Sequence record: NC_042018.1 | Direction: 5' to 3' (one strand) | Length of the DNA: 64,000 nt | Shown here: in pieces, positions 41,809-63,585 of the stretch | Numbering within the stretch: the stretch's first letter is position 1 | How the letters are laid out: each line of letters opens with the position of its first letter | The notes under the pieces: generated by a model | Databases searched by the model: none | The model's input: the letters and a program-made list of their open reading frames with translations, nothing else | What the model was told of the DNA's origin: nothing | Translations under genes and position numbers: made by a program

Positions 41809-41838
41809 AGCAACCCTTGATGAATAAAGGATAGAGAA

Positions 41839-44427: not shown

Positions 44428-44428
44428 G

Positions 44429-44479
44429 AATTCTATGGTAGGTCTTTACTCTAACCTCCCCTCACCGGGAGGTTAGGGT
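44429..44479 (+). promoter_or_regulatory. late TATG motif followed by leader/terminator hairpin
   Basis: AATTCTATGGTAGGT, then 12-13 bp stem 44448-44479. Confidence 0.5.
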
Positions 44480-46906: not shown

Positions 46907-46915
46907 GGTGTAATC

Positions 46916-47431: not shown

Positions 47432-47486
47432 TTTGTTGTCCGGTTCTGTTGGGAGAGCCGGGCAATTTCTTTTTATTGGTGATGGC

Positions 47487-49946
47487 ATGAAACCGATCAA
47501 TGAATTGGATGTATTTGTACCAGAGGTTCCTCTCTTAGAAGAATCAGATTTGGTAAAGGGCGGGGAACAAGGCCCGAGTAATGCTCAAGCACTGGCATTG
47601 GCTAGCCGTACCCATTTTCTCAATGAACGTCGTAAAGAACTCGAAACCGAACTCGACCGCATTGATACCGCACTCAGTGGTTTAGATGCTGATAAAGTTG
47701 GGGCCGATGCTAAAGGCACGGCAACCGGTTTGGTTGATGCGCACGTAAAAGATGCTGACCCACACACCCAGTATTTAACCGATGCCCGTGGTAAACTGTT
47801 GTTTGTGGACAAAACCACCGCCAACAAACCGAATGGGTATCTGCAGTTAGATGCCAACGGGAAACTGCCGGCCGGTGTTGTAACCAGCTTATCGGCACGC
47901 TACGTTATTGTGGCTGACGAAACAGAGCGACTGAAGTTAACAACCACAAATGACCTTACCATTGCAGCGCAGCAATCTGACGATACCCTGTATTACTTAA
48001 ACGCCGGGACTGACCCTTCTGTCAAGGGTAATTGGATTAAGGGTCAATCGGCTACGGTATCGGGCGTCGTATCTTTCTTTGGTCGTACCGGGGTAATTAC
48101 TGCTGAAAGCGGTGACTATACGGCTGACCAGATTAATGAAACGTTAACGCGGTTATTTGTTTCCCCTCAAGAGAAACAGACCTGGAACCAGAAACAGGAT
48201 AAGCTAGTTTCCGGTACCAACATTAAAACCTTTAAAGGACAGTCTTTGGTTGGGGCGGGCGACCTTTCATTCAACTATGCTGACTTTGGTGCGGCAGCTG
48301 AAATACACAAGCATGTGGCTTCGGATATCACTGACTTTAATGATAAGGTAGACGGGCGTGCTTCTTCTTTATTAAAGGCAGGCCAAAACATACAGCTCGT
48401 GGTTGATCCTACAACCAAAGCCGTTACCATTAATGCGGCACCACCTAATGCGGCTTCATTGTTTGCTTCGGTTGACCGAATGGGTTCGTCTGCAAACCAG
48501 ATGCACGTGATAAACTTCAACCAGGATATAACGTACAACCTGGAAGCGTATGCTTTGAAGTTAGAGAAGGGGTCGACTAACCAGGTGTATACCTTGGAAA
48601 CGTTTGATCCAACTTCTGCACCGTTCTTTAACTCTACCCAATATCTGACCTTTAACGGTGTTTTGGGTGTGGCGTATAACTGGACACCGACGCTGCGTCA
48701 AAACAAAACGCGTTATGAAATGGAATTCGATCCGAACGTTAATGCTTTATCACTGTTCTCTACAGCCGGTAAAAACATTATCCCGGTGATGGCAGGCAAT
48801 GGTGGGATTAACGGTTATGTGCCGTTTGCATCTTCGGAGTACAGTGCGGACTATACAGCATATCGTGCGTTCTCCAACCTCCAGGCTGCTAATGGTGCAT
48901 CAGACTGTTGGGCATCAGGTAAAGGCCAAGTTCCGTCTGCTGCTAACCCACAATGGATAGGTATCTCTTTGCCTGCGGGCGTTAAGATAACAGCGTACAG
49001 TTTTGTGAACCGTAGTGCAGGTGCGGTATCCACACCGTCTAAATATAAACTCCAGGGCAGTAACGATAAAACCACCTGGGATGACATTGAAGCGGTACGC
49101 TCTAACACTAACGATGCAGCGGCGTTTGAGTTCTTCCATTCAGCGAGACCTACCAAAGCCTATCAGCATTATCGTCTCTACATTACTGAACGTTATCCTA
49201 ACAATCCCGACTATGACTTTGTCGTGGTTTGGCGTTTACGGTTGTATGTAGAGAAACCGGTGGTGTTCCAGGGTGAGACCAGTGATGCTTTATACACACT
49301 GGACAGTAATAACGTATTGGTTCCGTTAACTGACATCTCTGACGCGGGTATTGAAGCACAGGGTATTTCGGTGGCTAAAAATATTCCACCGGCAAACCTG
49401 TTGGCTTATCCGTTGAAAAAGATTGTGGGACTGGAACCCTCTACCCTGAACGTCAAGCTTGTCCCGATGGAACAGATCGCCATCATGAAAGACCCGTTGG
49501 TGACGAAGCCGTTTAGTAAAATAAACGCCATGAACTACACCGCGGTCCTGTTGGAAAAGACCCGGTACGCTATCTCCCCTGACGGTGTTACCTTCTATAC
49601 TTACAACGGCGGTACGTGGACGTCATTAGGGGCGTTGAAGAACGACCTGGCGTCAGCGAAGAAATTGGCGGCTCAAGGTATGATGAACGGCTTGGCAACA
49701 GGGACTATCATGACCTTGTACACCCAGCTGGGGATTAGATTCACGGCGTTCAGTTTGGCCTACGGGATTTTCCCAACGGTAGCCAACGAAGTTATCTCGG
49801 TCGACCAAACGTTGTTGAGTGTGGATTTCGCGGATACGTGGAAGAAACAAACACCGGCTGAGGTAGAGATTCGTTACAGCTCCGGGAATATCTCCTTTAA
49901 AACGGTGGCAGCGGGAGACTACAAGCTAGTTTACCAAGTCGCCTAA
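47487..49946 (+). CDS. tail fibre protein with discoidin domain (paralog of 44516)
   Basis: Start reset to ATG 47487 (MKPINEL aligns with MKEITEV); same N- and C-termini; QWIGISL, YKLQGSND..W, YQHYRL. Confidence 0.8.
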   Translation: MKPINELDVFVPEVPLLEESDLVKGGEQGPSNAQALALASRTHFLNERRKELETELDRIDTALSGLDADKVGADAKGTATGLVDAHVKDADPHTQYLTDARGKLLFVDKTTANKPNGYLQLDANGKLPAGVVTSLSARYVIVADETERLKLTTTNDLTIAAQQSDDTLYYLNAGTDPSVKGNWIKGQSATVSGVVSFFGRTGVITAESGDYTADQINETLTRLFVSPQEKQTWNQKQDKLVSGTNIKTFKGQSLVGAGDLSFNYADFGAAAEIHKHVASDITDFNDKVDGRASSLLKAGQNIQLVVDPTTKAVTINAAPPNAASLFASVDRMGSSANQMHVINFNQDITYNLEAYALKLEKGSTNQVYTLETFDPTSAPFFNSTQYLTFNGVLGVAYNWTPTLRQNKTRYEMEFDPNVNALSLFSTAGKNIIPVMAGNGGINGYVPFASSEYSADYTAYRAFSNLQAANGASDCWASGKGQVPSAANPQWIGISLPAGVKITAYSFVNRSAGAVSTPSKYKLQGSNDKTTWDDIEAVRSNTNDAAAFEFFHSARPTKAYQHYRLYITERYPNNPDYDFVVVWRLRLYVEKPVVFQGETSDALYTLDSNNVLVPLTDISDAGIEAQGISVAKNIPPANLLAYPLKKIVGLEPSTLNVKLVPMEQIAIMKDPLVTKPFSKINAMNYTAVLLEKTRYAISPDGVTFYTYNGGTWTSLGALKNDLASAKKLAAQGMMNGLATGTIMTLYTQLGIRFTAFSLAYGIFPTVANEVISVDQTLLSVDFADTWKKQTPAEVEIRYSSGNISFKTVAAGDYKLVYQVA

Positions 49947-49994
49947 TTTTATGGTAGGTTCAATATTGCTCAGCCTCCCTTTCGGAGGCTGAGT
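49945..49994 (+). promoter_or_regulatory. late TATG motif followed by leader/terminator hairpin
   Basis: AATTTTATGGTAGGT, then stem GCTCAGCCTCC/GGAGGCTGAGT. Confidence 0.5.
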
Positions 49995-50021
49995 ACTTTC
50001 TATTTTTACAAGGCGATTCGT

Positions 50022-50891
50022 ATGGGCTTAAATCTTCGTTTTATGCCTTACACTGATGGGGATTCTGACGGGGTGGATATTTACCGAGCCACATCCAAGA
50101 CCGGTGAGCGTCAGCTCATGAAGAGTCTGGCCGCTGGGATTCATGAGTTTAGCGACCACAGTGTGGAAGCCAATAAAGTGTATTGGTACTGGATACTGAA
50201 CAAATCTGCCGCCAACGGAGACCGACTCAGCCAACCCATGAGTGCACCAACGTTCATTGATTTGGGCCCTGGCCCGAAGAAACTGCTACGTGGGGATTGG
50301 GATTTCGGTTACCTGGGGTATGTCCCGGTCGCGGATATGTTCACCTATGCTCAAGCACAGAGCGCAGCAGCCATTCAAGCAGCACCGGATGGCGGCACAC
50401 TGAACGGATTCCATAAGTGTGTAGTACGGGGACGGATTATTTACTTTGGGGATGTCATTTATTCTCGTACAGTAAACCGTACCACGGTAGGGAATGCTCT
50501 GTTAGCACAGGACAGCAATCCGTTAACCACAGCACCTCGTCTGGCGGTAAATGATTATGAGTACATCGTACGGTGCCCTTACTCTTCTACTTTATCTACT
50601 ACTGCGGTTGTGGGTACGGGTGACGGGTTGGATGGTACCATCAAACTCAGTGAAGTCGGCATGCTAGCGTCGCTTATTCTGGATGCAGATACTGCTGGTA
50701 AGCTTAGTGGGAATAAGCTGGGTGATCTCGCTAACAATGGGTTATCAACCTTTTATTTCTCTAATACGTACGCTGCTAACAATGTTGTGAACGTGTTCAG
50801 TCTGGTTGCTGATGCGTCTATCGGACCTGCCAGTGACATGACAGGGAACCGTCCATTCTGGCCTGTCTTCGAGTTAGTGCTACACGAATAA
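50022..50891 (+). CDS. putative virion protein, FN3-like + GPGP + lectin-like PVxEL family
   Basis: VDIYR, YWYW, DLGPGPKKLLRGDWDFG, C-terminal FWPVFEL. Confidence 0.7.
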   Translation: MGLNLRFMPYTDGDSDGVDIYRATSKTGERQLMKSLAAGIHEFSDHSVEANKVYWYWILNKSAANGDRLSQPMSAPTFIDLGPGPKKLLRGDWDFGYLGYVPVADMFTYAQAQSAAAIQAAPDGGTLNGFHKCVVRGRIIYFGDVIYSRTVNRTTVGNALLAQDSNPLTTAPRLAVNDYEYIVRCPYSSTLSTTAVVGTGDGLDGTIKLSEVGMLASLILDADTAGKLSGNKLGDLANNGLSTFYFSNTYAANNVVNVFSLVADASIGPASDMTGNRPFWPVFELVLHE

Positions 50892-50917
50892 GGCTGTTAA
50901 ACATACAGGTGGATTAA

Positions 50918-52669
50918 ATGAGTTTACCGAGTCGGCAACTCTTTTTAGACCGTTTTATGGAAGTAAACCGTATACGGTATAAAAACGATCCTGAAGTTTT
51001 GGACCGGTTGAACAAGCTCACTGTAAAAGACATTGTCTTTGAGGGGCTGACCGAAGACCCAAACCGACCTGGGGGGATGATTTCCAACTTCTCGGTACCT
51101 GCCAAAGCCATTGAAGCCTATGCGCAACGATGGATTCCGGTAGACATCAAGAGCAAACACATCATCAATCCAGCAAACGTTACCAATGTCCCGACATTGA
51201 ATGACGTCATTGCTGCGCAAGCCCGCGGGTTGTTTACCTATCAGGATAATGGGTCAACCAAACTAGCGATCGTTATGGCCTTCCGTCAAGATATCCCTGT
51301 GGAGAACTTGGCGAAAGAAGTTACCAAAACCTTAAACCGCACAACCAGTTACGTCATTAAAGACGGTGACCTGCAAATAAACTTCAACGACTCCACGGAT
51401 GATTATAGATTATTTGATGTTCGTAATGAGACCATCAGCGGTGAAGTAGCAGTGATTCGTCTCCCCAGTAACCTGTTAAAAGGAACCTGGTGGTTAGGCT
51501 ATCTGGGTGAGTGGACACCTGATGAAGTTATCCGTCCCAGTATTCTGGCCGAAATGGTTGGGGTGCCGAATGGGATTAACCCAGACGTGGAATGGTTAAA
51601 GTTCTCAGTAGAGGGCCGCATCATTTATGTTGCCAAACGACCCATTAGCAAAATGGTCAGTTATGGTAGCCTGTCGGGGTTAAACCTGGTAGACGGTAAC
51701 CGTATTGTTGATATCGATCATGAACAGTACAAGATTCGACTGTTAACCGCAGAAGACTCTGACACGTCCGACTGGAACCGGGTGATGTACCGTGTTTCTG
51801 AAGATGACCCCACAGGAACTTTCTGGGAAGAGTTCACCGACCAAGAGTTAGGTATCAATAACTCTGATAACGGTGGGATTACCCTGTCTCGTTCTGAAAG
51901 TGGTGGGTCGGTCTACGGTCGTGGTCGTTACAGCATCACGTCTCTGCAATCTGTTATTAAAACCGCTTCTTCTCCGGCAACGGGCTGGCGTCCTGTTCTG
52001 GAACTTATCGGTGTTGACAATATTGAATACGCACCGACAGCACACTTAACCGGCGTGATTCCTGTTGAACCTGAGATGTCAGGCGGAGCATCGGGTGACT
52101 TTGTTTATGCCGTAGGTCCTGTGGCTTCACGCATGACGGAACACACCGACTTTAACGGTTACCGTTATGATGATGTCGTCTTTGCGGTGCAGGGTGTTGA
52201 GGTCTATCAGAACCAGTTAGTGCCGGCAACGGAAATTGTTGACTACAGCTACGTCGCGGTCTTCAACGTTATGTCGGTAGAGGTTAAACCTGACACGGTC
52301 GTGAAACCCACGGAAATTACAGGGTCGAGAATTCAGGACGTTGTAATTGTACCAAATACCGTTAAGTCAACGGTTGACCCTGACTGGCTGGAGTCTGACA
52401 ATAACACCGCCGTGTCGAACGGAATCATTTCAGCCGTTGCAAAACGCGGTGTTATCACTTTGTTACCAACTTCGGGTTACGCTAATACCGCTGACTCAAA
52501 CAGCGTGGTTGGGGCCGTAACGAAGAAAGGTAGCTATGTCATTGCCGCTGATTTTGTAATTGAAGAGATTACGTTTAACGGCATCGACAACTGGATTCCA
52601 GAAACAGACTACGGCGATCTGTTTGAAGAAGAAGTGTATAATCCTGACACGACATTTATGTCTTTCTAA
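50918..52669 (+). CDS. putative virion protein L1: scaffold domain + lectin-like domain + tail
   Basis: RQLFLDRF N-domain; WLKF..EGR, YGRG...GWRPVLE; C-terminal PETDYGDL. Confidence 0.7.
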   Translation: MSLPSRQLFLDRFMEVNRIRYKNDPEVLDRLNKLTVKDIVFEGLTEDPNRPGGMISNFSVPAKAIEAYAQRWIPVDIKSKHIINPANVTNVPTLNDVIAAQARGLFTYQDNGSTKLAIVMAFRQDIPVENLAKEVTKTLNRTTSYVIKDGDLQINFNDSTDDYRLFDVRNETISGEVAVIRLPSNLLKGTWWLGYLGEWTPDEVIRPSILAEMVGVPNGINPDVEWLKFSVEGRIIYVAKRPISKMVSYGSLSGLNLVDGNRIVDIDHEQYKIRLLTAEDSDTSDWNRVMYRVSEDDPTGTFWEEFTDQELGINNSDNGGITLSRSESGGSVYGRGRYSITSLQSVIKTASSPATGWRPVLELIGVDNIEYAPTAHLTGVIPVEPEMSGGASGDFVYAVGPVASRMTEHTDFNGYRYDDVVFAVQGVEVYQNQLVPATEIVDYSYVAVFNVMSVEVKPDTVVKPTEITGSRIQDVVIVPNTVKSTVDPDWLESDNNTAVSNGIISAVAKRGVITLLPTSGYANTADSNSVVGAVTKKGSYVIAADFVIEEITFNGIDNWIPETDYGDLFEEEVYNPDTTFMSF

Positions 52670-52682
52670 AAGAGAGTAAATC

Positions 52683-53579
52683 ATGGGCATTCGTCTCGAA
52701 ATTACTAACAAAAACACCGTACCGGTAACGATTAACGTTTACCGTGGTGATCAAGAACTGGACCGTGCTAATCTCCCGCCGGCAATTGGTCAGATTGCCA
52801 ACACCACCGATAACCCGGCTATCTTTAATGATAACACGGTGGTGCAAGGCAAAACGTATTTCTACGTGTTTGAAACCGTGGGACCGAAAGATCGTGCCTA
52901 CACCCGTAACTTCAAAATCCAGGCGCTGGAAACCCGCGGTCCGGGTGATAACGATCTCAAAATCGGCAACCGCAACCTGGGGTATTACGGCAACCTGTCA
53001 GCCGGTGCGATTACTGATGCCGCGTCTCTGTGCTCTGCGATCGGTTTGACCGGCCACACCGTTAACTCCTTTGCGACCTGGTACAAATTTGCGCGTAAAG
53101 GCAAAGTGCTGTTTGTGCCGAACGCACACATTGCTCGCGGTGGGATGTCGTTCAACAAACTGAAGACGCTCGGTCTGGTGGACGGCAAAACCATCACCAT
53201 CGGTGCCTTTAAATATAAAGTGCGTCTGATGAGCGGTTGGGATGACAGCAAAGCGCTGGATGCGAACATGGTGGTAGGTACTAACTACAGCATGGAAGAT
53301 TACCTGGACAACTCTTGCGAATTCAACGACCTGGTATATCCGCTGGTGAAGTGGACACCTAACGGTCAGCATTTGCCAGGTCTGTTCCAGCAGACAGTTA
53401 CGGCGGTAACGTCTAACACGCTGCCGCTGTGCAAGGATAACGACGGTACAAAATTTGTGCGCCGCACTATGGCGGCTGATACCCGTGCCGCTGTTTCCAC
53501 CATTGCTATCGATAATACACCAGACGCTGTAAACGCTTCTTACAGCCTGCTGCCGGTTCTGGAACTCATCGAGGGGTAA
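52683..53579 (+). CDS. putative virion protein A1 (FN3-like + PVLEL family)
   Basis: INVYR..ELDR..LP, ETRGPG, WYKFARKGKV, LLPVLELIEG; paralog of 57179. Confidence 0.7.
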   Translation: MGIRLEITNKNTVPVTINVYRGDQELDRANLPPAIGQIANTTDNPAIFNDNTVVQGKTYFYVFETVGPKDRAYTRNFKIQALETRGPGDNDLKIGNRNLGYYGNLSAGAITDAASLCSAIGLTGHTVNSFATWYKFARKGKVLFVPNAHIARGGMSFNKLKTLGLVDGKTITIGAFKYKVRLMSGWDDSKALDANMVVGTNYSMEDYLDNSCEFNDLVYPLVKWTPNGQHLPGLFQQTVTAVTSNTLPLCKDNDGTKFVRRTMAADTRAAVSTIAIDNTPDAVNASYSLLPVLELIEG

Positions 53580-53583
53580 TCTC

Positions 53584-54516
53584 ATGTCATTAGTGGTGCA
53601 ATGGGAAGATATCCCAGATGCCGCTGGTTACGAAATCTATCGGTCTAAGACGAAGTTCTCTTTGAGCACGTTGCCGACCGATAAGGTTAGTGTGCCGGCT
53701 GGTGCAACGGAATACGAATACACCGACGTGGATCGCCAAACCGTTTACTGGTTTGCTATTCGTACCCTCGACGCTAACGGAGCAGGAACCTTTGGTCAAG
53801 TCTTCCCGTTAGGTTATTTCCCGGACACCGGTCCTGGTCCTTCTACATTGTTACGTGGGGACTGGGCGTTTGGTTTCTTTGGGGAAGTTAGCCCGAGTCT
53901 GGTAGGGACATCGGACGAAGTGTATGCTCAACTGACGCAGACAACGGCGGATAACCCCATCAAGCCTACGGTAAAAGATTTTGTTTACCTGAAATGCATT
54001 GTGAACGGGAAGATTGTCTTTATTCCTTCGTCTCCGTTTGCAACCTATGCGGTGATGGGAACGACGGCGCATTACATCTCAATAGGTGCAACGGGCGATG
54101 CTGGGTTAGATGACAACACCGCACCGGTTATCAAACTCAAGGGACGGGATTACCGTCACCGCTTACCAAGAGCAAGCAACAGCAAATCCACAGCGGGAAC
54201 TGTTAATCTGGATGTGGTATCAGACGATGTGTTAATGTCTGAGGTCGGTATGTTAGCGGCGCTCCTGTTATCGACCGCTGAAACAGACGTGTCGAAGAAC
54301 CCAGACAACCGTAATGCCGCACCGTTGCATTATCGTCTCGGTGACTATACCGATCTTGCCAACGTCATTACGCTTCATCGTTTCGCTAACTACGGTGGCA
54401 ACAACAACTCGCTGTACAGTTACGTTGTTACGCCAAGCACGGGCGCTATTGCAAACAAGGTCTGGTATTACACCGACCCGAAAGCCTACCTGCCGGTATT
54501 AGAACTGCTCTTCTAA
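53584..54516 (+). CDS. putative virion protein B1 (FN3-like + PVLEL family)
   Basis: PDTGPGPSTLLRGDWAFG, KCIVNGKI, YLPVLEL; paralog of 58072. Confidence 0.7.
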   Translation: MSLVVQWEDIPDAAGYEIYRSKTKFSLSTLPTDKVSVPAGATEYEYTDVDRQTVYWFAIRTLDANGAGTFGQVFPLGYFPDTGPGPSTLLRGDWAFGFFGEVSPSLVGTSDEVYAQLTQTTADNPIKPTVKDFVYLKCIVNGKIVFIPSSPFATYAVMGTTAHYISIGATGDAGLDDNTAPVIKLKGRDYRHRLPRASNSKSTAGTVNLDVVSDDVLMSEVGMLAALLLSTAETDVSKNPDNRNAAPLHYRLGDYTDLANVITLHRFANYGGNNNSLYSYVVTPSTGAIANKVWYYTDPKAYLPVLELLF

Positions 54517-54526
54517 GGAGAACATA

Positions 54527-55387
54527 ATGGGTGTGAAGATTCAGTGGATTGACCCCAATATCGATCCATTAGATACAGTAGAAATCTGGCGTTCTCCCAC
54601 AAAAGCCGGTGCGCCGGTTAAGATTGGGAGTGTGGCTGGCGACGTGCGTGAGTATCAGGACGATACAGCTGAACGAAACAAAGTTAGTTGGTACACACTG
54701 ACTTCAGTGCGTGGTCAAGGCAAAGCCATCAGTACACCGTTTCCGGTAGGTAACTATCCTGATACGGGTCCAGGCCCTAAAACCATCATGCGTGGTACGT
54801 GGGAGTTTGGTGTGTTCGGTGAAGTGGATGCTAACCTGCTTCCGGGTTTCAGTGAAATCCAGGAGAAGGTGGGTATCGCTCCGAACAATTCCGTGGTCCG
54901 ATTCTACAAATGGATTGTTAACGGCCGCATCATCTTTATTCCATGGGGACCGTACAGCAGTGCGTTTGGTACTACTATCACTGCTGCCGGTATCATGGTG
55001 CCTCAGGGTAAAACGAATGAGGCGGGTTTGGTGATTGATCGTGAGGGGTACGGCTACAACATTCGTCCTCCTTACGCGACCAACAACTTCACCAGTGAAC
55101 TAACGACCATTGCTGACGGTGGGGATGAAACCCTGAAGCTTTCAGAGTTGGCTGCAATTATGACCAGTCTGGTTGGGATGGACACGAAGTTAATGTACGG
55201 TGACATGAAGTGGGGTGATATTTCTCCTGCTGCAGCGGGCGGTAACTATTACCTGACCAACACCTACATTAACGCCAACAACTCCACCCTGGTAGCAAAC
55301 ATCGCAGCGTCACCGGCGTTAGTGAGATCAGGTAGTACATCTTCTGCTCGTGGCTTGTGGCCCGTGTACGAACTGCTGTTAACATAA
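54527..55387 (+). CDS. putative virion protein C1 (FN3-like + PVYEL family)
   Basis: NIDPLD, PDTGPGP, KWIVNGRI, LWPVYEL; paralog of 59047. Confidence 0.7.
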   Translation: MGVKIQWIDPNIDPLDTVEIWRSPTKAGAPVKIGSVAGDVREYQDDTAERNKVSWYTLTSVRGQGKAISTPFPVGNYPDTGPGPKTIMRGTWEFGVFGEVDANLLPGFSEIQEKVGIAPNNSVVRFYKWIVNGRIIFIPWGPYSSAFGTTITAAGIMVPQGKTNEAGLVIDREGYGYNIRPPYATNNFTSELTTIADGGDETLKLSELAAIMTSLVGMDTKLMYGDMKWGDISPAAAGGNYYLTNTYINANNSTLVANIAASPALVRSGSTSSARGLWPVYELLLT

Positions 55388-55395
55388 TGGGGACA

Positions 55396-55419
55396 CCTCC
55401 TCCCTTCACTGGGAGGAGG
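55396..55419 (+). terminator. terminator-like hairpin
   Basis: CCTCCTCCC-TTCACT-GGGAGGAGG between the two cassettes. Confidence 0.65.
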
Positions 55420-55440
55420 GTCTTATATAACTGATGGCAA

Positions 55441-55449
55441 AATGTTATG
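55441..55449 (+). promoter_or_regulatory. putative late promoter (TATG)
   Basis: AATGTTATG. Confidence 0.55.
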
Positions 55450-55498
55450 TTCCTGATTTCTTTATCCCTTATTATCCGTAAACGGAGAGGTACATGAC

Positions 55499-57163
55499 GT
55501 GAGTATAAACAGGCGTCAGCTCTTCCTGGACAGGTTCCTTGCCTATAACAGGTCGCGCTATAAAGATAACCCTGACGCACTCAAACGACTGGACAGACTC
55601 ACCTTCGAGGACATGGTTTTCGATGGCATTGCTATTGATACCAGCAAAGCCGGTGAGCTTCGTCGTCGCGTCGCTAACTTCCATGCCGATGCGCAAATGA
55701 TGGAAGGTGTTGATCAACGCTGGACGTGCACCAGTCTGTTGCATCGCAAAGTCATCCCCACTGAAAACTATATCAACAGCACGCCGTTTGCCTCTCTGGA
55801 AGATTTTAAGAAAGTTAACCTGCAAGGTGTGTATCAGTATTTAGATGACGGTGTTCCGGTATTGGGTGTGGTACTTGCTACCGACTCGTCTAAAACCGAA
55901 GACGTTACCCCGGAGTTGATTACACTCCTGAACACGGTATCTCGTTACCAACTGTTAACCACCGAGCTGTCAATTGAAGCTGCTGACCGTGACCACTTCC
56001 CAATGCACTTCACCTACATGGGTGATACCATTGTGGGTCGCATTACTGTCATCCGTCAAGCTGCAGACCGACCTGCGGTAGGTAACGAAATTCTTGGTTA
56101 TTACGGTGAGTTCCCGTCCGACTACTTAATCTCCAGCGGTGTATTGGCTGAGATGTTAGGGTTGGCTGGTGATAAACTGATTACCGGTGCAGAGACAGTG
56201 CCGTGGTTGAAGTTTGCTTACTTCGGTAAACTCCTGCATGTGTCAAAGCGTCCTATCAGTAAAAACATGACGTGGACGGCGCTGAACGACATGGGGTTAG
56301 TTGACGGCTCCCGTATTATTCAGTTAGGTAATAAGCGTTATCGGGTACGTTTATTACACGGAGCAGCAAATGACTTCGGTAATGAATGGAACGACCTCAT
56401 CTATCGCGTTCATTATCAAGATCCAACTAATACGTTCTGGGAGCGATTCACAGACGAAGAGATGGGGCTTGGTTGGGATGCAGTTACCAACAAATGGTAT
56501 CGTGATGGGTCCATTGCCTTTACCCAGGATGCAGTCGATGCTACTACGGTGGTAACACGTGGTGGCGGGCAGGATGGTGCGTCACTGACCGTGACCGGTA
56601 CCGTAGCGAAAACCACGACCAGCAAGTATTACGGTTGGCGACCGGTGTTGGAATACATTGGAACAAGCGGAATAGATACACCGTACATTGCGGATATCAG
56701 TTCTCCACTGTCGTTGGATTTCTCATCTGAAATCAACACCGACTTTACTGGGGTCTTGCGTCCGTTTGGGTTTGACGTGGAAATGGTGCCGGATGCGAAG
56801 ATTGTACCTAGCGCTGTTAACAACGTTACCCTGTTTGCGGTGAAGTTGGATTCTGCTTCGCTGGTAGGTAGTGCAGAAGCTCCGGTTGTCACCAAAATCG
56901 AAAACAACTCGGTGAAATTCCCACGTGATGTCAGACTGGATAAAATGGTCCCGTTAACGTGTGACATCTATTCACTGGAAGAGCCGGACGATACAGTTAG
57001 ACTGGCTACGGTCGACATGGGTGACATCACTCCACGTCAAATTCGACCAACCATTCCATTAGCGGCACAGGACCTCGGTGACATTGCAACCAAACAAGTC
57101 AACCCAGATGCTGATGGGAAATACAACGGTCTGTTTACCCATAACGGCACGCTACATTATTAA
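55499..57163 (+). CDS. putative virion protein L2: scaffold domain + lectin-like domain + tail
   Basis: GTG after GGAGAGG; RQLFLDRF, WLKFAY.GK, TRGGG...YGWRPVLE, QDLGDI; paralog of 50918. Confidence 0.7.
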   Translation: MSINRRQLFLDRFLAYNRSRYKDNPDALKRLDRLTFEDMVFDGIAIDTSKAGELRRRVANFHADAQMMEGVDQRWTCTSLLHRKVIPTENYINSTPFASLEDFKKVNLQGVYQYLDDGVPVLGVVLATDSSKTEDVTPELITLLNTVSRYQLLTTELSIEAADRDHFPMHFTYMGDTIVGRITVIRQAADRPAVGNEILGYYGEFPSDYLISSGVLAEMLGLAGDKLITGAETVPWLKFAYFGKLLHVSKRPISKNMTWTALNDMGLVDGSRIIQLGNKRYRVRLLHGAANDFGNEWNDLIYRVHYQDPTNTFWERFTDEEMGLGWDAVTNKWYRDGSIAFTQDAVDATTVVTRGGGQDGASLTVTGTVAKTTTSKYYGWRPVLEYIGTSGIDTPYIADISSPLSLDFSSEINTDFTGVLRPFGFDVEMVPDAKIVPSAVNNVTLFAVKLDSASLVGSAEAPVVTKIENNSVKFPRDVRLDKMVPLTCDIYSLEEPDDTVRLATVDMGDITPRQIRPTIPLAAQDLGDIATKQVNPDADGKYNGLFTHNGTLHY

Positions 57164-57178
57164 TTCATAGGAACAGTC

Positions 57179-58069
57179 ATGGCTATTCTGATTAAATTCA
57201 ACAACCCCAATGCTGATGACATTACCCTGAATGTCTATCGAGCAGATGCTGAAATGGACCGCAGCAAACTTCCGGCTCCGCTGGCTACCTTAACCGGTCG
57301 CCCAACTGAGTTCCTGGACAAAACTGCTGTGCAGGGCAAAACCTACTTCTATATCTTCGAAGCTATCGGTAACAACGACCGTGACATCTCTCGCAACATT
57401 AAACTGATTGCAGCAGAAACACGCGGTCCAGGCAACAACATTCTGAAAGAAGGCACTCGTGAGCTAGGCCACTATGACGTGATGCCGGCGTCTGACCTGC
57501 TGGATTACCAACAGCTGTTTGCTAAGATGGGTAACCCTGCTGGCTTTACAGCGAGTAACTTCACGAACTGGGTTAAGTTTGCACGCAAAGGGAAAGTCTT
57601 CTTTGTGCCTTCATCACCTATTGGGGTAGCTATGCCTCAGGCAATGAAAGATGCCGGCTTTATGGGTGACGGTAAGATTATTGAACAGAACGGGTTCAAA
57701 TACCGTGTTCGTTTAGCACGCGGTTGCAGTGAAACCGATGCCGAAGCGACGACGTTCCTGGCGGATAAAGTCGCGTTGACTAACTACGACATGGATACAT
57801 TTGATATCAGTTGTGAATTCAACGATCTGGTGTACCCGCTGTTAAACGTTACGCCGTTAAAACAACGGTTGTCAAATAAACTCAATGGCAGCATCAAAAC
57901 GATAACAGGTAGTCGCTTTGTTCCTGTAAAGGAAGCATTGGCTGATTCGTCTCCGGTGTCCCGTACCTATTACGACGCAACCGATCGTACCCAGGCGACG
58001 TGTCTTCGTGCTATTGCTCTTAACGTGGCTTGTGCGTTCTGGCCGGTATTAGAACTGATTGAGGGCTAA
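57179..58069 (+). CDS. putative virion protein A2
   Basis: LNVYR..EMDR.KLP, ETRGPG, WVKFARKGKV, FWPVLELIEG. Confidence 0.7.
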   Translation: MAILIKFNNPNADDITLNVYRADAEMDRSKLPAPLATLTGRPTEFLDKTAVQGKTYFYIFEAIGNNDRDISRNIKLIAAETRGPGNNILKEGTRELGHYDVMPASDLLDYQQLFAKMGNPAGFTASNFTNWVKFARKGKVFFVPSSPIGVAMPQAMKDAGFMGDGKIIEQNGFKYRVRLARGCSETDAEATTFLADKVALTNYDMDTFDISCEFNDLVYPLLNVTPLKQRLSNKLNGSIKTITGSRFVPVKEALADSSPVSRTYYDATDRTQATCLRAIALNVACAFWPVLELIEG

Positions 58070-58071
58070 TT

Positions 58072-59037
58072 ATGGCAGTCATTATTAGTTGGAAGCCCAT
58101 AGCCAACGCCGACAAGATTCGCGTGTATCAATCAACTACTCCGTTCACGTTTGCAGACATTGCCGGGAACCCCGCTATTACCATGGTAGAAGTGCCCGGG
58201 ACTGATGTTAGCAAAGCTGTGACCATCCCACGTAATAACGTGCACTGGTTCGCGTTGTCAGCGGTTGATGCAGACGGTCTGGAGTTGTTCTGTGAAGTGT
58301 TCCCAATGGGTAACTTCCCTAACACCGGACCTGGGCCGGATACCATTCTTCGTGGTAACTGGGATTTCGGTTTGTTTGGTGAGCTTTCTACCGAACAGCT
58401 GTTTACTAATGCTGAACTAGGTGCAGGAATTGTTGCAGCAGGTGCGACCGTTGATAACGTTACCAGCGGCAACCGTATCACCAAGTGGTTTAAGTGTATC
58501 GTTAACGGGAAGATTCTGTTTATCCCAAATAACTACGTTTATCTCATGCCTGAAGGTGGCGATAAACCGACCCTGTTAGCCCAGCGTAAGTTGAGCATGA
58601 CCGCCGGGTTTCCGGGTGCAGCTGTTCTAAGCAAGAACGGCAATGATTTCATGTATCGTTTACCGTCCTATACCCGAAGTGTGCCTGCTGGGCAAATCAC
58701 GCAGCCAGCCTCTGACGATATCTTGAGTTCTGAAGCCGGGATGATTGCGGCATTAGAAACAGGGGCATTGAAAATTGGGCGAAACAGCGTGGGGGTTGGG
58801 CGCACTCCGTATAACGTGTGGGATAACCTCGGTGATATGGTCTTGGGTTCAACTGGTAACACCCCGCTGGCAACGGCGAACTATTATTCAGTAAGTTCGA
58901 ACATGCAATGGGGTGTGCACTGCATGATTCCTCGTGATGGGTCGTACATGACCTACGGGATTCAGCAGTGGTTCCAGAACAGTAGCGTCTCCTACGGTAA
59001 CTTCTACGTCATGCCGATTCTTGAATTGGTCTTCTAA
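58072..59037 (+). CDS. putative virion protein B2
   Basis: PNTGPGPDTILRGNWDFG, KCIVNGKI, VMPILEL. Confidence 0.7.
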   Translation: MAVIISWKPIANADKIRVYQSTTPFTFADIAGNPAITMVEVPGTDVSKAVTIPRNNVHWFALSAVDADGLELFCEVFPMGNFPNTGPGPDTILRGNWDFGLFGELSTEQLFTNAELGAGIVAAGATVDNVTSGNRITKWFKCIVNGKILFIPNNYVYLMPEGGDKPTLLAQRKLSMTAGFPGAAVLSKNGNDFMYRLPSYTRSVPAGQITQPASDDILSSEAGMIAALETGALKIGRNSVGVGRTPYNVWDNLGDMVLGSTGNTPLATANYYSVSSNMQWGVHCMIPRDGSYMTYGIQQWFQNSSVSYGNFYVMPILELVF

Positions 59038-59046
59038 GGATATCCA

Positions 59047-59901
59047 ATGAGCATTACTATTAACTTTCGTAACCGCAACATTGATGCCCTGGATGAGATT
59101 CGTATTTACCGTACGGAGAACCGGGGTGTTGCACCAACCCTGATTGCGACCATTACCAACGACAAGGTCTTTTACAAGGACACAACAGCCCAGTACAACC
59201 AACTGTACTTCTATCAGACCGGTGCGGTGTATCAAGGTATCGAAAACCGCAGCGAACTGTTCCCGGCTATTGCGTTCCGTAATAATGACAACGGTCCGGG
59301 TCCACAAAAGCTCATTCGCGGTAACTTTGAGTTTGGGCTGTTTGGTCCGGTGGACATGAACGACCTGCCGTCGTTTGATGCGGTGTCGGTATCAGCAGGC
59401 GTTACTCGTAACGTTACTGGTAACCCCACGGCGGCGCTGAAGTGGTGTATTAATGGTAAAATCATTTACACCTTTAATGCGGCGTTCCACACGGGTATCT
59501 CCAAAGACAACCTGAAGAAGCTGTTCATTGCTGCAAACAAAGAGTCGGACTTCTTCAGTATCGACTTAGCGGGGAAAACCTTTAAGGTACGTCCGCCGTT
59601 TGCCACTACGCTGCGTGGGGCCATCGTAGGGACCGGGGAAACCTATCCCCTGACGTGGTCAACGGATGTTCAGCAAAGTGAAGCAGGCGCGATTATGCGC
59701 AGCTATTTGGGGTCTGCTGCTGTCAAGGCCGGCGATCGGATGTATGACCTGGCTCCGTTACCGGCGGGTGGTTTCTGGACTAACACCTACTACGATCTGA
59801 ACACGTACTACATGTTCTATCTGGACGGCAACACAAGCGCTTATCGTGCATCCTCTGGTACGGGTCCTTTCTATCCGGTGTATGAGTTGATGCTTGATTA
59901 A
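59047..59901 (+). CDS. putative virion protein C2
   Basis: NIDALD, DNGPGPQKLIRG, KWCINGKI, FYPVYEL. Confidence 0.7.
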   Translation: MSITINFRNRNIDALDEIRIYRTENRGVAPTLIATITNDKVFYKDTTAQYNQLYFYQTGAVYQGIENRSELFPAIAFRNNDNGPGPQKLIRGNFEFGLFGPVDMNDLPSFDAVSVSAGVTRNVTGNPTAALKWCINGKIIYTFNAAFHTGISKDNLKKLFIAANKESDFFSIDLAGKTFKVRPPFATTLRGAIVGTGETYPLTWSTDVQQSEAGAIMRSYLGSAAVKAGDRMYDLAPLPAGGFWTNTYYDLNTYYMFYLDGNTSAYRASSGTGPFYPVYELMLD

Positions 59902-59916
59902 TAAACTGGAGACTTA

Positions 59917-60501
59917 ATGAAAATTCCAAACATGCAGTTGTTTTTGGACAGGTTCATTAGCGTTAACAGAGTCAGGTATCGGCAACAGCCGAGCGTTTTG
60001 GCTATCCTCGACACATTGACATTAAAGAACGTTATCTTCTCGAAGGTGCGTTCTGATATTGATGCGTTCGGGGAACTGGTGCGTACCGTGGACATGTATG
60101 TGCCAAAAGTCATGAAGGCCATGGACCAAAGTTGGTTACCTGCCTACTACACCACCCCGCGTATCACCAACATGGTGACCACCGATGTGCAGGATGAAAA
60201 TGACCTCATCACGCTCGAGGTACCGGGGTTCTACTTTTACAAGGACCGTAACAGTAAAGTGCAGGGATGTGTGGTGGTGCCTGCCCAGATTAATTCGGAA
60301 GACATTGCGGATTACGTCAAGGACATGGTGAAGAATGCAAATGCTTACCAAATCAATGACGACCAAATCTCGGTAGCCAGTAACTTCTCTGAAGTTATTG
60401 TAGACACCCCCGCCATCTACCAACGACTCAAGCTTGTCCTTTCTCTGCGTGATTTCTCATTTAATATCCCCGACACGGACTACGGGGATTTGGGGGTCTG
60501 A
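59917..60501 (+). CDS. putative virion scaffold-family protein
   Basis: MQLFLDRF...IPDTDYGDL. Confidence 0.7.
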   Translation: MKIPNMQLFLDRFISVNRVRYRQQPSVLAILDTLTLKNVIFSKVRSDIDAFGELVRTVDMYVPKVMKAMDQSWLPAYYTTPRITNMVTTDVQDENDLITLEVPGFYFYKDRNSKVQGCVVVPAQINSEDIADYVKDMVKNANAYQINDDQISVASNFSEVIVDTPAIYQRLKLVLSLRDFSFNIPDTDYGDLGV

Positions 60502-60509
60502 ATTTTATG
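60501..60509 (+). promoter_or_regulatory. putative late promoter (TATG)
   Basis: AATTTTATG. Confidence 0.55.
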
Positions 60510-60541
60510 GACCGATTATTATAACACCGAGGTAATTTATT

Positions 60542-61177
60542 ATGGGAATGCTTGACCAACGTCAGCTATTTCTGGATAAGTTCGTTGCGTATAACAAACA
60601 ACGTTATGCCTCCGAACCTAACAAAGTTGCGGCGTTCGATAACTTATCGTTGAGCGACGTCCAGTTCGGTACCATCACCAAGACGGAAGATAACGGCGTC
60701 TACAAACGCTCTTACGACCACGTTAACTCAACGTCTCGTAACTTCACGTCTGACCCGCAGCGTTTCAATGCAGCTAACCTGGCCAGCCAGTGGGTAACCA
60801 CAGCCAGCCAGATGGCGGACATTGCCGATGTGCGTGCCGCACCGCCGGGCATCTATTTCTACCTGGATGCTCTGAACAACAATGCCCGTACCCTGTGCGT
60901 GGTATATCCGTACGACTTCGATACCAGTGACGATGTCGCGTTCAAAGATCAAATCTTCACCATGATCAACGGCGCGTGTAAATATGCACTGGACAAATCG
61001 ATCTTCGATATCCAGCCGTGGACTCAGTCTGACCCGACGGACAAAATGACTTACGTTCAAGACGAAGTCATCGCGGGTTGGGTGCTGACCATCAAAGGTA
61101 CTCAGGATACGCTGGTTATTCCGGATACCGACTACGGCGATCTGATTAACGAACAAAACGGTGGCGTTGCGCCGTAA
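60542..61177 (+). CDS. putative virion scaffold-family protein
   Basis: RQLFLDKF...IPDTDYGDL. Confidence 0.7.
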   Translation: MGMLDQRQLFLDKFVAYNKQRYASEPNKVAAFDNLSLSDVQFGTITKTEDNGVYKRSYDHVNSTSRNFTSDPQRFNAANLASQWVTTASQMADIADVRAAPPGIYFYLDALNNNARTLCVVYPYDFDTSDDVAFKDQIFTMINGACKYALDKSIFDIQPWTQSDPTDKMTYVQDEVIAGWVLTIKGTQDTLVIPDTDYGDLINEQNGGVAP

Positions 61178-61195
61178 TAACGTTTGTTACTGACT

Positions 61196-61222
61196 AGGTT
61201 AACCCCGCGATGGGGTTAACCT
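61196..61222 (+). terminator. intrinsic terminator
   Basis: AGGTTAACCCC-GCGAT-GGGGTTAACCT followed by a T-run. Confidence 0.75.
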
Positions 61223-61250
61223 TTTCTCTTTTCTGTTAAGGACATTTGAT

Positions 61251-62126
61251 ATGGACGCAAACCTGCAACTCTTCCTTGACAAGTTCATTGAGGTGAATAA
61301 GCAGAAGTATGCTGATGAACCTGAAGTGCTTGCTCTTCTGGAAGGATTGACACTGGCGGATGTTGTTTTCGACAGCATCGAAATCGATGAGAGTTTAGGC
61401 GAAGGCGGTCGTATTGCCAGCTTCCATTCTCCTTCCCGTAAATTCAATGCCCCGCAACAACAGTGGCTTTGTTCAACCCTCCAGGGTAAGAACGTCGTTA
61501 CCTTTACTGATGCAAAAGTGTTTGATGACAAAGCATCGGTAAAAGCACTGACGGCACCAGGTATCTACCTGCACAAAGCAGGCGACGCCACAGCGGTATC
61601 GGTATTGACAGCTGAAGACGTTGCTGATGTTGACACTGCAACGCAAAACATTATTGCTGCCTTAACCGGTGCGGTAAATTATGAACTAAAGGTTGAAGAC
61701 CTGTTGATTCCAACCTTTACCCTCGGAACAGATTTCGAAGGTCTGGTCAGTTCACACTGCATCGAAGACACGTTTAACGTGTACTTTATCCCGAAAGCGG
61801 TAGCTCCGTCTGAACCGGGTGAAGGTGGTGAAATTGATCCAGGTACTGGGGGCGGTGAAACAGGCGGTGGTGAGACCGGTGGTGAACCTGAAGTGGATCC
61901 CAACGAACCGGTAATCACTCCAGAAATGGAAGCCGAAGATAAAGCCCTGGCCGACCCAACTGCCGGCGGCATTTATTCTGACGTAGGCGACAAAGGGTTT
62001 GGTGTATTAACTGTACCGCGTGAAATCTCTGAAGAGACAGCCAACATTGCTACCATCACTGGTATGACGTTTGGTCTGGTAGGCGCTGGTTCTCTGACGG
62101 TGGAGACTTTAAATGAAAACGCGTAA
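61251..62126 (+). CDS. putative virion scaffold-family protein with Gly/Glu/Pro linker
   Basis: LQLFLDKF N-domain; PGTGGGETGGGETGGEP linker; small C-terminal domain. Confidence 0.7.
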   Translation: MDANLQLFLDKFIEVNKQKYADEPEVLALLEGLTLADVVFDSIEIDESLGEGGRIASFHSPSRKFNAPQQQWLCSTLQGKNVVTFTDAKVFDDKASVKALTAPGIYLHKAGDATAVSVLTAEDVADVDTATQNIIAALTGAVNYELKVEDLLIPTFTLGTDFEGLVSSHCIEDTFNVYFIPKAVAPSEPGEGGEIDPGTGGGETGGGETGGEPEVDPNEPVITPEMEAEDKALADPTAGGIYSDVGDKGFGVLTVPREISEETANIATITGMTFGLVGAGSLTVETLNENA

Positions 62127-63462
62127 GCATATTAACGAAATCTTCCTGGAAGCCACGGCGGATTGGCTGCGTAAACAAGGCCGCGAAGCTGACGCGAAAA
62201 TCATTGACGGTATCGACCCGGCCACGTTTGTCCGTAGCGGATACAAATCCAACAACATCTACGGCAGCAGCGGTAACCCGAACAAAGGTAACGGTGGCAA
62301 AGTCACCATTAACCAACTGGGGTACACGGCGCAGGTCACTAAACGTACCGGCGAAGTCATGAACGCCAGAAGTTTAACGCTCGCTGACTTCATTGCCCAA
62401 ATCCCACCGGAAATCCGTCCTAAGTTCATTGGTGACCTCGGTTCCAGTTCCAGTACCGTATGGGACCCGGCGTCTGTGGGGCTGAACGTAGCACGCCCTG
62501 GGTGTCGTTGCTTTGGCCAGATGGGTGCTAACGGTCAGGCATTCATTGTGATTGTGGGTTCTGATGAAGATGCCACTGATCCGGCTGTGATTGAGAAGTA
62601 CCTGCCGTTTACGTTTGGGTTCACCAAATCAGATATCTATCCGGGCAGTGCTTACGGTGCGGAAACTTATTTCCGTAATAACACCAACCTGTTTAACTCA
62701 ACGTTCAGTGCCCTGGTGTGGAAATCTACCCAGCCAGCTCCTGAACAGAAACCGGTTAACCAGGACCTGCCGATTCTGACGTACTCAACTCCGACCAACA
62801 AAGCACCGAGCGCACGTTATCGTTCCGTTCCGCCGTTGAACCTGACGGTTGACTGGGAAGTGCTGCGCGGTAAGTACACCTCGAAGGTCCATTATAACCA
62901 ACTGTGGATTGACCTGGTTGAAGCGGCGCTGCGTAAAGCCGGTGATAACTACAACGCTGATCTGATTAAACGTATTAATCCGGAAACCTTTGTTCCGTTC
63001 CAGATTAAGAACGACACAGCGAACAAGAAGTACACCTACCTGGGCGCACAGTGCAGTACGTCGAAGCTGTATTTCGAAAGCATCACCTTCAACATCTATC
63101 AGGCTACAGCGGATTCTACCCGTATGTTCCTGGCAGACTTTGGTTGGGTGTATGCACCGGAAGCGGGTGTCACCTGGAATCTGTTGGCAAACCAAGCAGC
63201 AGCGAACGCCTATACCGGTACGGATATGGTGGGGGAGAATGAATACCATTACTTCTTCCAGCATGTACCGAAAGGCACGAAGCTGACCAAAGCGATGGTG
63301 TTGGATGCATTCCCGTTCCATGCAACCGGTGTGGATTACCTCTACCCGCTGTTCACGGACACCATGACCAAAGCCTCGGTCAACTTCTACAACGAGCTGC
63401 AGGAGAACATGTGGACCGGTTCTTCTACTATCGGTGTTAACGTTATCGCTGATTTAGTGTAA
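62113..63462 (+). CDS. putative virion protein with two tandem scaffold-like domains
   Basis: HINEIFLE..LRKQG..IDPATFV and HYNQLWID..LRKAG..INPETFV. Confidence 0.7.
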   Translation: MKTRKHINEIFLEATADWLRKQGREADAKIIDGIDPATFVRSGYKSNNIYGSSGNPNKGNGGKVTINQLGYTAQVTKRTGEVMNARSLTLADFIAQIPPEIRPKFIGDLGSSSSTVWDPASVGLNVARPGCRCFGQMGANGQAFIVIVGSDEDATDPAVIEKYLPFTFGFTKSDIYPGSAYGAETYFRNNTNLFNSTFSALVWKSTQPAPEQKPVNQDLPILTYSTPTNKAPSARYRSVPPLNLTVDWEVLRGKYTSKVHYNQLWIDLVEAALRKAGDNYNADLIKRINPETFVPFQIKNDTANKKYTYLGAQCSTSKLYFESITFNIYQATADSTRMFLADFGWVYAPEAGVTWNLLANQAAANAYTGTDMVGENEYHYFFQHVPKGTKLTKAMVLDAFPFHATGVDYLYPLFTDTMTKASVNFYNELQENMWTGSSTIGVNVIADLV

Positions 63463-63470
63463 ACCCCTAT

Positions 63471-63500
63471 CACTCCTGCCTCCGTAAGGGGGTGGGGGTG
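63471..63500 (+). terminator. terminator-like hairpin
   Basis: CACTCCTGCCTCC-GTAA-GGGGGTGGGGGTG. Confidence 0.65.
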
Positions 63501-63522
63501 GTATAACAATAATTTTTCAGAT

Positions 63523-63542
63523 CTACATTATTAATATGTAAG
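63523..63542 (+). promoter_or_regulatory. putative early phage promoter
   Basis: CTACATTATTAATATGTAAG. Confidence 0.7.
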
Positions 63543-63585
63543 TTTAGCTGATATCTTTTTATGAGGTGTAAATGAGGTAACCATT

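Follow-up and report, generated by a model that had tools for sequence, protein, structure and literature searches.

The stretch of DNA analysed here, referred to as the window, comprises 64,000 nucleotides and corresponds to bases 124001-188000 of NC_042018, the genome of Erwinia phage vB_EamM_RisingSun, a phiKZ-like jumbo phage of 235 kb whose host is Erwinia amylovora. In this window a cassette of four genes, designated L-A-B-C, is present in two tandem copies (gp197-gp204), which are adjoined by a ninth paralog, gp196, and followed by gp205-gp207, so that the whole region extends from gp196 to gp207 (50022-62126). Positions given below are those of the window, and the genes and signals of this region lie on the plus strand. 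Before this analysis, nine of the proteins of the region were annotated as virion structural proteins and three as hypothetical proteins. The explanation that we favour, with a probability of about 0.6, is a lineage-specific cassette expansion in which two diverged copies, each preceded by TATG-type signals, would encode virion-surface glycan-binding adhesins provided with anchoring N-terminal modules (N-modules).

The eight open reading frames (ORFs) of the two cassettes were all present and coincide with annotated RisingSun gp197-gp204. The first copy consists of L1 (gp197, 50918-52669, 583 aa), A1 (gp198, 52683-53579, 298 aa), B1 (gp199, 53584-54516, 310 aa) and C1 (gp200, 54527-55387, 286 aa), and the second of L2 (gp201, 55499-57163, 554 aa, with a GTG start), A2 (gp202, 57179-58069, 296 aa), B2 (gp203, 58072-59037, 321 aa) and C2 (gp204, 59047-59901, 284 aa). 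BLASTP comparison among the cassette proteins gave amino acid identities of 33% for L1/L2 (E 4e-70), 43% for A1/A2 (E 3e-67), 32% for B1/B2 (E 2e-39) and 31% for C1/C2 (E 3e-36), and matches across positions were far weaker than those of the positional pairs. The L1/L2 match covers only residues 1-401 and 1-422, respectively, and no similarity between both proteins was found beyond about residue 400. This positional pairing is far beyond chance, and it bears out the tandem duplication of four genes, one-to-one and in order, that had been proposed in the initial annotation. The signature peptides quoted there do occur in both copies, with the correction that NVYR..E.DR..LP requires three dots after NVYR.

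A maximum-likelihood tree was built with 27 small-subunit proteins from RisingSun, the metagenomic relative L004 (235 kb), the contigs L005 and L006 and the Shewanella phage FishSpeaker. The paralogs cluster by cassette position, since the A proteins (100/100), the B proteins (90/87) and the C proteins (92/93) each formed a clade, while gp196 (50022-50891) was placed as sister to C (81/85). The nine-paralog phylogeny suggested earlier as a check of the duplication therefore gave the grouping by position that it predicted. In L004, all nine genes together with gp205 and gp206 are kept in one-to-one order with identities of 50-73%. Because L004 retains all these genes, the cassette duplication must be older than the separation of both phages, and the comparison shows that the entire L-A-B-C cassette was tandemly duplicated in the RisingSun lineage ahead of that split.

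More recent events were evidenced by the alignment of RisingSun with Joad (L079) over 45800-64000. Over the roughly 8 kb from L1 to B2, only 2 differences separate the two phages. Divergence is 1.3-4% in the initial kb of gp195, in gp196, in the 3' half of C2 and in gp205-gp207, and it amounts to 15-50% in gp208/gp209. This mosaic divergence indicates recent recombination with intragenic breakpoints, which fall inside gp195, gp196 and C2 and not at the cassette borders. The earlier proposal that the cassettes are exchangeable as units consequently finds no support in RisingSun itself, where the duplication belongs to the lineage, L004 keeps the genes one-to-one and the breakpoints with Joad lie within genes.

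The nine paralogs and gp205-gp208 gave no usable Pfam match, and their architecture was deduced from structural models. The AlphaFold2 model of A1, with a mean predicted local distance difference test (pLDDT) of 92.7, consists of an N-terminal fibronectin type III (FN3) domain (residues 1-85) and a body of about 210 residues. In VIA-align searches the best match of the A1 FN3 domain had a Z of 8.3 and a root-mean-square deviation (rmsd) of 2.4 Å over 77 residues, and residues 1-84 matched many FN3 domains (Z 8.3-7.4), those of the tail tips of phages lambda and T1 included. A profile search of solved structures gave FN3-type matches only, among them a weak match to the FN3 domain of a pectate lyase. 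In the model of L1, an N-module (residues 1-183, pLDDT 70-83) is followed by the same body as that of A1 (193-365, pLDDT 80-91) and by a C-terminal region of 218 residues (366-583) that is not confidently folded (pLDDT about 30). The fold of the body became visible only with the L1 model because the FN3 domain had filled the VIA-align list of A1. With L1 193-365, the top rows and nearly all of the 50 listed rows were C-type-lectin folds (Z 8.5 to 5), including Treponema TvpA (2y3c, Z 8.5), PvdO (8.2), the C-domain of Legionella Lcl (8.1), Bordetella phage Mtd (7.2), TaqVP (6.2) and many animal C-type-lectin-like domains (5-6). The Z values on which the modelled fold is based are middling (7-8.5), but the list is uniform in fold. 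An independent lead came from the ESM Atlas, in which the body was related to DUF6273 surface proteins and to a DUF7941 cluster (template-modelling score, TM, 0.79). Neither the full A1 model nor the full L1 model had a match in the PDB at E <= 0.001 with Foldseek. According to these results, A1, A2, B1, B2, C1, C2 and gp196 all combine an FN3 domain with a C-type-lectin-fold body, in agreement with the FN3-lectin composition first attributed to the small subunits. In L2, an N-module and a lectin-fold body are continued by a C-terminal part that bears no relation to the one of L1.

The junction between the FN3 and lectin-fold domains is also noticeable at the DNA level. A family of 46-nt repeats at 50265-50310, 53830-53875, 54767-54812 and 58327-58372 (gp196, gp199, gp200 and gp203) codes for the conserved GPGP..RG.W.FG segment at this junction. 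A possible regulatory DNA motif was reported in gp196, gp199, gp200, gp203 and gp204 (Arens et al., 2018); since the 46-nt repeats encode the conserved junction, this motif most likely reflects paralogy and not regulation. Contigs of relatives from food-fermentation metatranscriptomes match B1 up to 53845, at the FN3/lectin junction, and then continue with unlike sequence, so the lectin-fold half of B1 seems to be much more diverged in those relatives, or replaced, than the FN3 half. Between 53845 and 54789 these contigs show an apparent joint of 943 nt, which is best interpreted as a mis-placement at the repeated GPGP-coding segment and not as a deletion.

Variability in the A family peaks at A1 residues 241-285, directly before the conserved last strand, and by analogy this stretch sits where the lectin-fold proteins diversified by diversity-generating retroelements (DGR) vary. 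The idea that the RisingSun proteins are DGR targets was discarded because no reverse transcriptase (PF00078) was found in the RisingSun genome; besides, the DNA repeats of the region are conserved paralog coding segments only. Mtd, TvpA and Lcl share with the RisingSun proteins the C-type-lectin fold (Z 7.2-8.5) and a most variable segment near the C-terminus, and they act as phage or cell-surface adhesins, whereas binding by the RisingSun proteins is a prediction. Furthermore, no sequence homology of the RisingSun proteins to DGR-, FGE- or Lcl-type proteins was detected, and their diversity comes from gene and cassette duplication and not from a retroelement.

The L-type N-module was found five times in the genome, always within the window: in L1 and L2 and, as the initial annotation had overlooked, in gp205 (59917-60501, 194 aa), gp206 (60542-61177, 211 aa) and gp207 (61251-62126, 291 aa). 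The first two of these additional proteins are stand-alone N-modules, and gp207 carries about 110 further residues. An ESM Atlas search with L1 1-185 gave no usable match. The peptide IP[DE]TDYGDL was identified at the C-terminal end of L1 (IPETDYGDL, 52598-52624) and gp205 (IPDTDYGDL, 60469-60495) and near that of gp206 (IPDTDYGDL, 61121-61147), and its coding DNA appears as a 39-nt repeat (82%). It is also present in the L004 orthologs and, in degenerate form, in two N-module proteins of FishSpeaker, and it is absent from L2 and gp207. By analogy with the model proposed for DUF7941 proteins, it could serve for docking between successive members of a head-to-tail chain.

The two cassettes are separated by a gap of 111 bp, in which a stem-loop of 9 pairs, 7 of them GC (55396-55419), is followed by AATGTTATG at 55441-55449, located 50 nt 5' of the L2 start. 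The late promoters of phiKZ have the core TATG, its G being +1 (PMC4666361). The motif WATGTTATG was found five times in the 64-kb window against 1.14 expected; all five copies are intergenic and oriented like the gene that follows, their 3' ends lying 34-50 nt ahead of its start codon, and two of the genes that they precede, gp163 and gp189, encode proteins well retrieved in the published lysate mass spectrometry (MS). At the equivalent place, L004 has a hairpin and then AAATGTTATG, the rest of the spacer being diverged, and L019 has a hairpin and then AATGTTATG between its two cassettes; a hairpin is likewise found there in L020. As the motif is enriched, is conserved in L004 and L019 and contains the TATG core of phiKZ, it is likely that a hairpin and a late-type promoter stand between the cassettes. 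The terminator placed here by the earlier analysis is thus a real and recurrent stem-loop, though its T-tail is weak, and the late motif that it described at 55441 is likewise real, ending in the phiKZ late core.

The first transcription unit, in a further point that had been missed, apparently starts with gp196. Between gp195 and gp196, TTTTATGG, with TATG at 49950, stands just upstream of a stem-loop of 12 pairs (49967-49995), and the unit seems to begin there; the hairpin could be either the terminator of the upstream unit or a hairpin in the 5' untranslated region of unit 1. The element T(C/T)TATGGTAGGT, with a strong hairpin after it, was observed 5' of both gp193 (44428-44446) and gp196 (49947-49960), and this combination may represent a TATG start whose 5' leader is structured, and not a terminator. 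The second unit seems to extend from L2 to a stem-loop with a T-tract at 61196-61222, its probable end, and therefore includes gp205 and gp206. The view that the second copy has its own promoter fits these data, while the notion that it is differently regulated fits them less, both units being apparently of the TATG type. A second and longer intergenic motif, CTACATTATYWAYATG(T/A)A or CTATATAGTTARGGTGAATAA, often located after a hairpin, was observed in the gaps near 1119-1219, 13198-13296, 14166-14353, 18665-18757, 20535-20648, 27400-27480, 32954-33008, 41749-41838 and 63463-63585; it is probably another class of promoter, early or middle.

Comparison with other phages revealed that the paralogs belong to a widespread family. 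They were matched by phrog_1062 at E 1e-31 to 1e-49 (phrog_1062 and phrog_21620 are labelled as virion structural protein), and the 36 structural relatives found in BFVD at E <= 0.001 are all jumbo-phage proteins, from EL, PhiPA3, 201phi2-1, Noxifer, Phabio, RSL2 and Erwinia phages. In Salmonella phage SPN3US the A1 profile matched nine ORFs, gp145-gp153 (E 1e-58 to 1e-21), in agreement with BLASTP. The best matches were gp146, gp149 and gp152 (E 1e-51 to 1e-58), accompanied by gp147, gp150 and gp153 and by gp145, gp148 and gp151. These ORFs form three tandem three-gene cassettes (gp145-147, gp148-150 and gp151-153), each with a long, an A-type and a B/C-type gene, whose positional partners are 30-47% identical. 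All nine fall within SPN3US paralog family B, of about 20 members (gp83, gp138-154, gp161 and gp237), which are virion proteins by MS (Thomas, 2016; Ali, 2017; PMC10052503). The accessible parts of these papers describe the paralog family and neither the cassette periodicity nor the FN3 and lectin folds. Both phages share sequence-homologous proteins and the succession of a long subunit, composed of an N-module and a lectin-fold body, and FN3-lectin subunits in tandem cassettes. However, the cassette has three genes and three copies in SPN3US but four genes and two copies in RisingSun, and the duplications of both phages are independent. The SPN3US long subunits also start with a recognisable DUF7941 module (positions 1-153 of PF25613), and the remaining members of family B are DUF7941 proteins. 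The distinct N-module of L occupies this same position, which is consistent with the single anchor-type subunit per cassette first proposed.

The survey of relatives comprised 65 IMG/VR loci together with FishSpeaker, L004 and L006. The unit consists of a lectin-fold long subunit followed by two or three FN3-lectin genes, and the long subunit begins with an N-module of the RisingSun type, with a DUF7941 N-module or with neither. Many loci have one cassette; two were found in RisingSun, L004, L006, L019, L020, L026, L030, L036/37 and L049, three in the SPN3US-like phages and four in L047. In the A-type tree, monophyly was recovered for the three copies of SPN3US (100/100) and for the two of L026 (99/96), and the A1 and A2 proteins of RisingSun and L004 group with FishSpeaker (85/65), apart from the single-cassette L013, L014 and L017. 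The copies of L019 and L020 each pair with a different single-cassette phage (L021 and L022), and so gain or loss of whole cassettes is indicated. Thus, the expectation that cassette number varies among relatives was borne out, and change of copy number by cassettes (from 1 to 4, in several independent events) appears from these trees to be general in phiKZ-like phages, RisingSun being one instance. The family was already known; what is new is descriptive detail, namely how its cassettes are organised, which folds are assigned to its proteins and the duplication in RisingSun. As a separate observation, RisingSun-like contigs of about 232.7 kb, whose A1 and L1 are 87% and 81% identical, are deposited in NCBI under Salmonella enterica assemblies, and close relatives of RisingSun may infect or accompany Salmonella.

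These data also bear on the possibility that the periodicity is a mere record of segmental duplication, the nine proteins being independent monomeric or partly redundant adhesins that form no cognate complex. Such a situation would agree with the A1 model, which is a compact two-domain monomer of high confidence, and with the duplication of B alone in FishSpeaker and the existence of three-gene cassettes that lack one member. In addition, equal stoichiometry is spoken against by the lysate MS, in which gp196, C1 and C2 were detected and L, A and B were not. However, the order long-A-(B)-C is held across very distant phages at 25-30% identity, copy number usually changes by whole cassettes and not by single genes, and all eight cassette genes are one-to-one in L004. 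On balance we consider this possibility less likely than the surface adhesins proposed below, and about as likely as a head location or a fibre.

The explanation preferred here starts from the hairpin and the TATG-type signal that stand 5' of each cassette copy and resemble the phiKZ late promoters, which are read by the non-virion RNA polymerase. The L, A, B and C products would be virion-surface glycan-binding accessory adhesins, whose lectin-fold domains would attach to polysaccharide of the host or the environment by the C-terminal segment in which they vary most. The N-module of L and the stand-alone N-module proteins gp205-gp207 would anchor these proteins to the particle or chain them, as has been proposed for DUF7941 proteins, and the two diverged cassettes could supply two sets of binding specificities at one late time.

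Where on the particle such proteins would be located is a point on which the published data diverge. In the accessible part of the SPN3US proteomic study, gp145-gp152 had head/wild-type ratios of 1.06-1.35 in purified tailless particles; for comparison, the ratios were up to 1.56 for family B, 1.39 for the major capsid protein and 0.02-0.07 for tail proteins. All of family B, gp153 included, was assigned to the head. On the other hand, DUF7941 proteins are very abundant in Goslar virions and form filaments in vitro, and some of them bear carbohydrate-binding or hydrolase domains (bioRxiv 10.64898/2026.04.21.720040). According to the proposal of the same preprint, these proteins would form a fiber cloud with its anchorage at the peripheral baseplate, the site at which the N-domain of phiKZ gp127 is seen. 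Because the SPN3US homologs are in the head fraction and the DUF7941 proteins are placed at the peripheral baseplate, the appendage location assumed in the initial annotation is doubtful, the more so as there is no homology to the phiKZ gp131-135 fibre. Free filaments that co-sediment with heads could, by analogy with the DUF7941 filaments, reconcile both sets of results.

A first alternative is that the proteins are associated with the head, as in SPN3US, forming an external decoration of the capsid or neck or fibres that aid adsorption like Hoc, the two cassettes then providing two decoration sets. Its basis is that SPN3US family B, the direct homologs gp145-gp152 among its members, was scored as head in the accessible part of that work, where tailless particles from an amber mutant of the tail tube were purified in CsCl and analysed in three replicates. 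It would also suit the lysate MS of RisingSun, in which C1 (rank 12) and C2 (rank 13) outrank the tail tube and sheath, suggesting a high copy number. Nevertheless, gp83, the sole phiKZ homolog of the lectin-fold body according to the A1 profile, is not mentioned in the main text, as far as accessible, of the phiKZ capsid paper or of the whole-virion atlas (PMC13250141). In vitro filament formation by DUF7941 proteins makes an unattached co-sedimentation with heads possible, and phiKZ gp127 is seen at the baseplate. A location on the head is for these reasons held only as a tentative alternative. It is much less probable still that the proteins are internal and ejected from the head. The SPN3US family is in the head fraction, and the label 'Head ejection?' was tentatively given by the SPN3US authors to gp141, gp143 and gp160 in their Table 1. 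However, that label concerns full DUF7941 members and not cassette proteins, family B is not among the head proteins reported to be cleaved by the prohead protease, and the plan of FN3 and lectin fold, together with the carbohydrate-binding and hydrolase additions of relatives, suggests an external role.

Several points weigh against the explanation of the cassettes as late-expressed surface adhesins. Regarding expression, no good T-tract follows the hairpin at 55396-55419, and motifs based on TATG are short; RNA-library contigs span the gap (55192-55509), read-through and DNA carry-over being indistinguishable in them. Both cassettes are covered by contigs that come from four metatranscriptome runs and belong to relatives with 85-99% identity, but these contigs are silent on transcript ends, strand and transcription. 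Regarding the virion, the published RisingSun MS, with peptides of gp196, gp200, gp204, gp206 and gp207, was done on crude lysate and not on purified virions, and the abundant SPN3US family B members that carry the ejection label are possibly internal. Regarding function, the fold matches on the models are middling, and a common fold is no proof of sugar binding. Finally, a cut-off as permissive as E 10 brought up no PF25613 match in the RisingSun genome, while the controls SPN3US and phiKZ gave 17 and 3 matches, and profile-profile comparison of the L N-module with the DUF7941 N-terminal module in two hhalign runs gave non-significant probabilities of 0.6% and 4%.

A structural likeness between the two modules was detected, L1 1-182 aligning weakly with the phiKZ gp127 N-domain (9xqd_0) at Z 5.3 and rmsd 4.3 Å over 125 of 150 residues, and by Foldseek at E 0.19 with a probability of 0.6, also a weak match. 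The L N-module was kept outside DUF7941 because this likeness is weak and the profile comparison is not significant; it is treated here as a positional analogue of the DUF7941 module and not as a member of that family, although it is possible that it is a distant homolog. EL and FishSpeaker also lack a PF25613 match and have the L-type N-module instead, and both types of module occur together in none of the 65 surveyed loci. As in RisingSun, the DUF7941 proteins (Goslar gp22/gp23 and phiKZ gp126/gp127/gp143) are many paralogs with an N-terminal module of about 150-180 aa that stands alone or is fused to carbohydrate-binding domains, and they are abundant in virions, as the RisingSun proteins would also be. 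The two systems differ in that their sequence and profile similarity is not significant and in that the RisingSun FN3-lectin subunits are without any DUF7941 module. With respect to EL (L003), the L-type N-module profile matches a 204-aa frame at 163385-163894 of its record, where the annotated gp158 has only 109 aa, and the start of this gene may be mis-annotated. The EL gene lies directly upstream of the genes for a lipase, a tail fibre and a Kelch-like virion protein (gp157-155).

The same likeness to gp127 is relevant to a second alternative, closer to that of the initial annotation, in which each cassette would build a hetero-oligomeric tail or baseplate fibre of one anchor and three FN3-lectin subunits, resulting in two fibre types, perhaps at two lobe positions. 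In phiKZ, the fibre has been proposed to consist of three gp131 and one each of gp133, gp134 and gp135, with two docking sites per lobe (Sycheva, 2012; PMC13250141). In this proposal it is a heterohexamer of one long and three shorter tandem paralogs that occupies two positions (unit1 and unit2) in each star lobe. This layout is strikingly analogous to the RisingSun cassettes, although without homology: the A1 profile matched only gp83 in phiKZ, the profile of the L N-module matched nothing there, and homology to gp131-135 was rejected since neither profile matched any of them. Part of the analogy is that the phiKZ fibre proteins have common N-terminal docking domains and specific C-termini; a difference is that the distal domain of gp131 is a beta-propeller, whereas the RisingSun body has a lectin fold. 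A fibre would nonetheless accord with the location of gp127, a DUF7941 protein, in the outer peripheral baseplate, where the Goslar preprint proposes all DUF7941 proteins to be. It would likewise accord with the conserved L-A-B-C gene order, with the similar counts of peptide-spectrum matches (PSM) of long and A-type proteins within SPN3US cassettes (61/44 and 188/161) and with the annotation of neighbour genes as tail-fibre or carbohydrate-binding. Set against this are the lack of sequence homology to gp131-135, the co-purification of the SPN3US homologs with tailless heads at the level of the major capsid protein and the silence on gp83 in the accessible text of the phiKZ structural atlas. 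A cassette-encoded fibre appears possible, with odds clearly below those of surface adhesins anchored by N-modules.

A more speculative development, which we regard as unlikely in its full form, is that the cassette is a self-contained stoichiometric adhesin module, with one anchor lectin-fold subunit and two or three FN3-lectin subunits, that would cap or decorate N-module filaments on the particles of chimalliviruses. The number of cassettes (1-4) would then set the number of glycan specificities, and whole cassettes being duplicated, lost or swapped would drive the evolution of host range, a same-fold alternative to diversity-generating retroelements.

Outside the cassettes, discoidin (F5/8 type C) carbohydrate-binding domains were identified in the neighbouring gp193 and gp195, in favour of the proposed adhesin role. 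Elsewhere in the window, thymidylate synthase is annotated in two pieces (gp186 and gp188) flanking the GIY-YIG homing endonuclease gp187 (38523-40748), an interruption of the intron type.

The analysis sharpens a conflict between the head location evidenced by SPN3US proteomics and the peripheral baseplate suggested by the phiKZ and Goslar structures, and it offers for the published RisingSun regulatory motif an explanation as a conserved coding segment of paralogs. The region is also connected with paralog family B of SPN3US and, by a looser tie, with the filament-forming DUF7941 proteins. RisingSun is a candidate biocontrol phage against the fire-blight pathogen Erwinia amylovora, and twelve of its vaguely annotated proteins can now be assigned, on the basis of structural models, a defined architecture of FN3 domain, C-type-lectin fold and anchor module.

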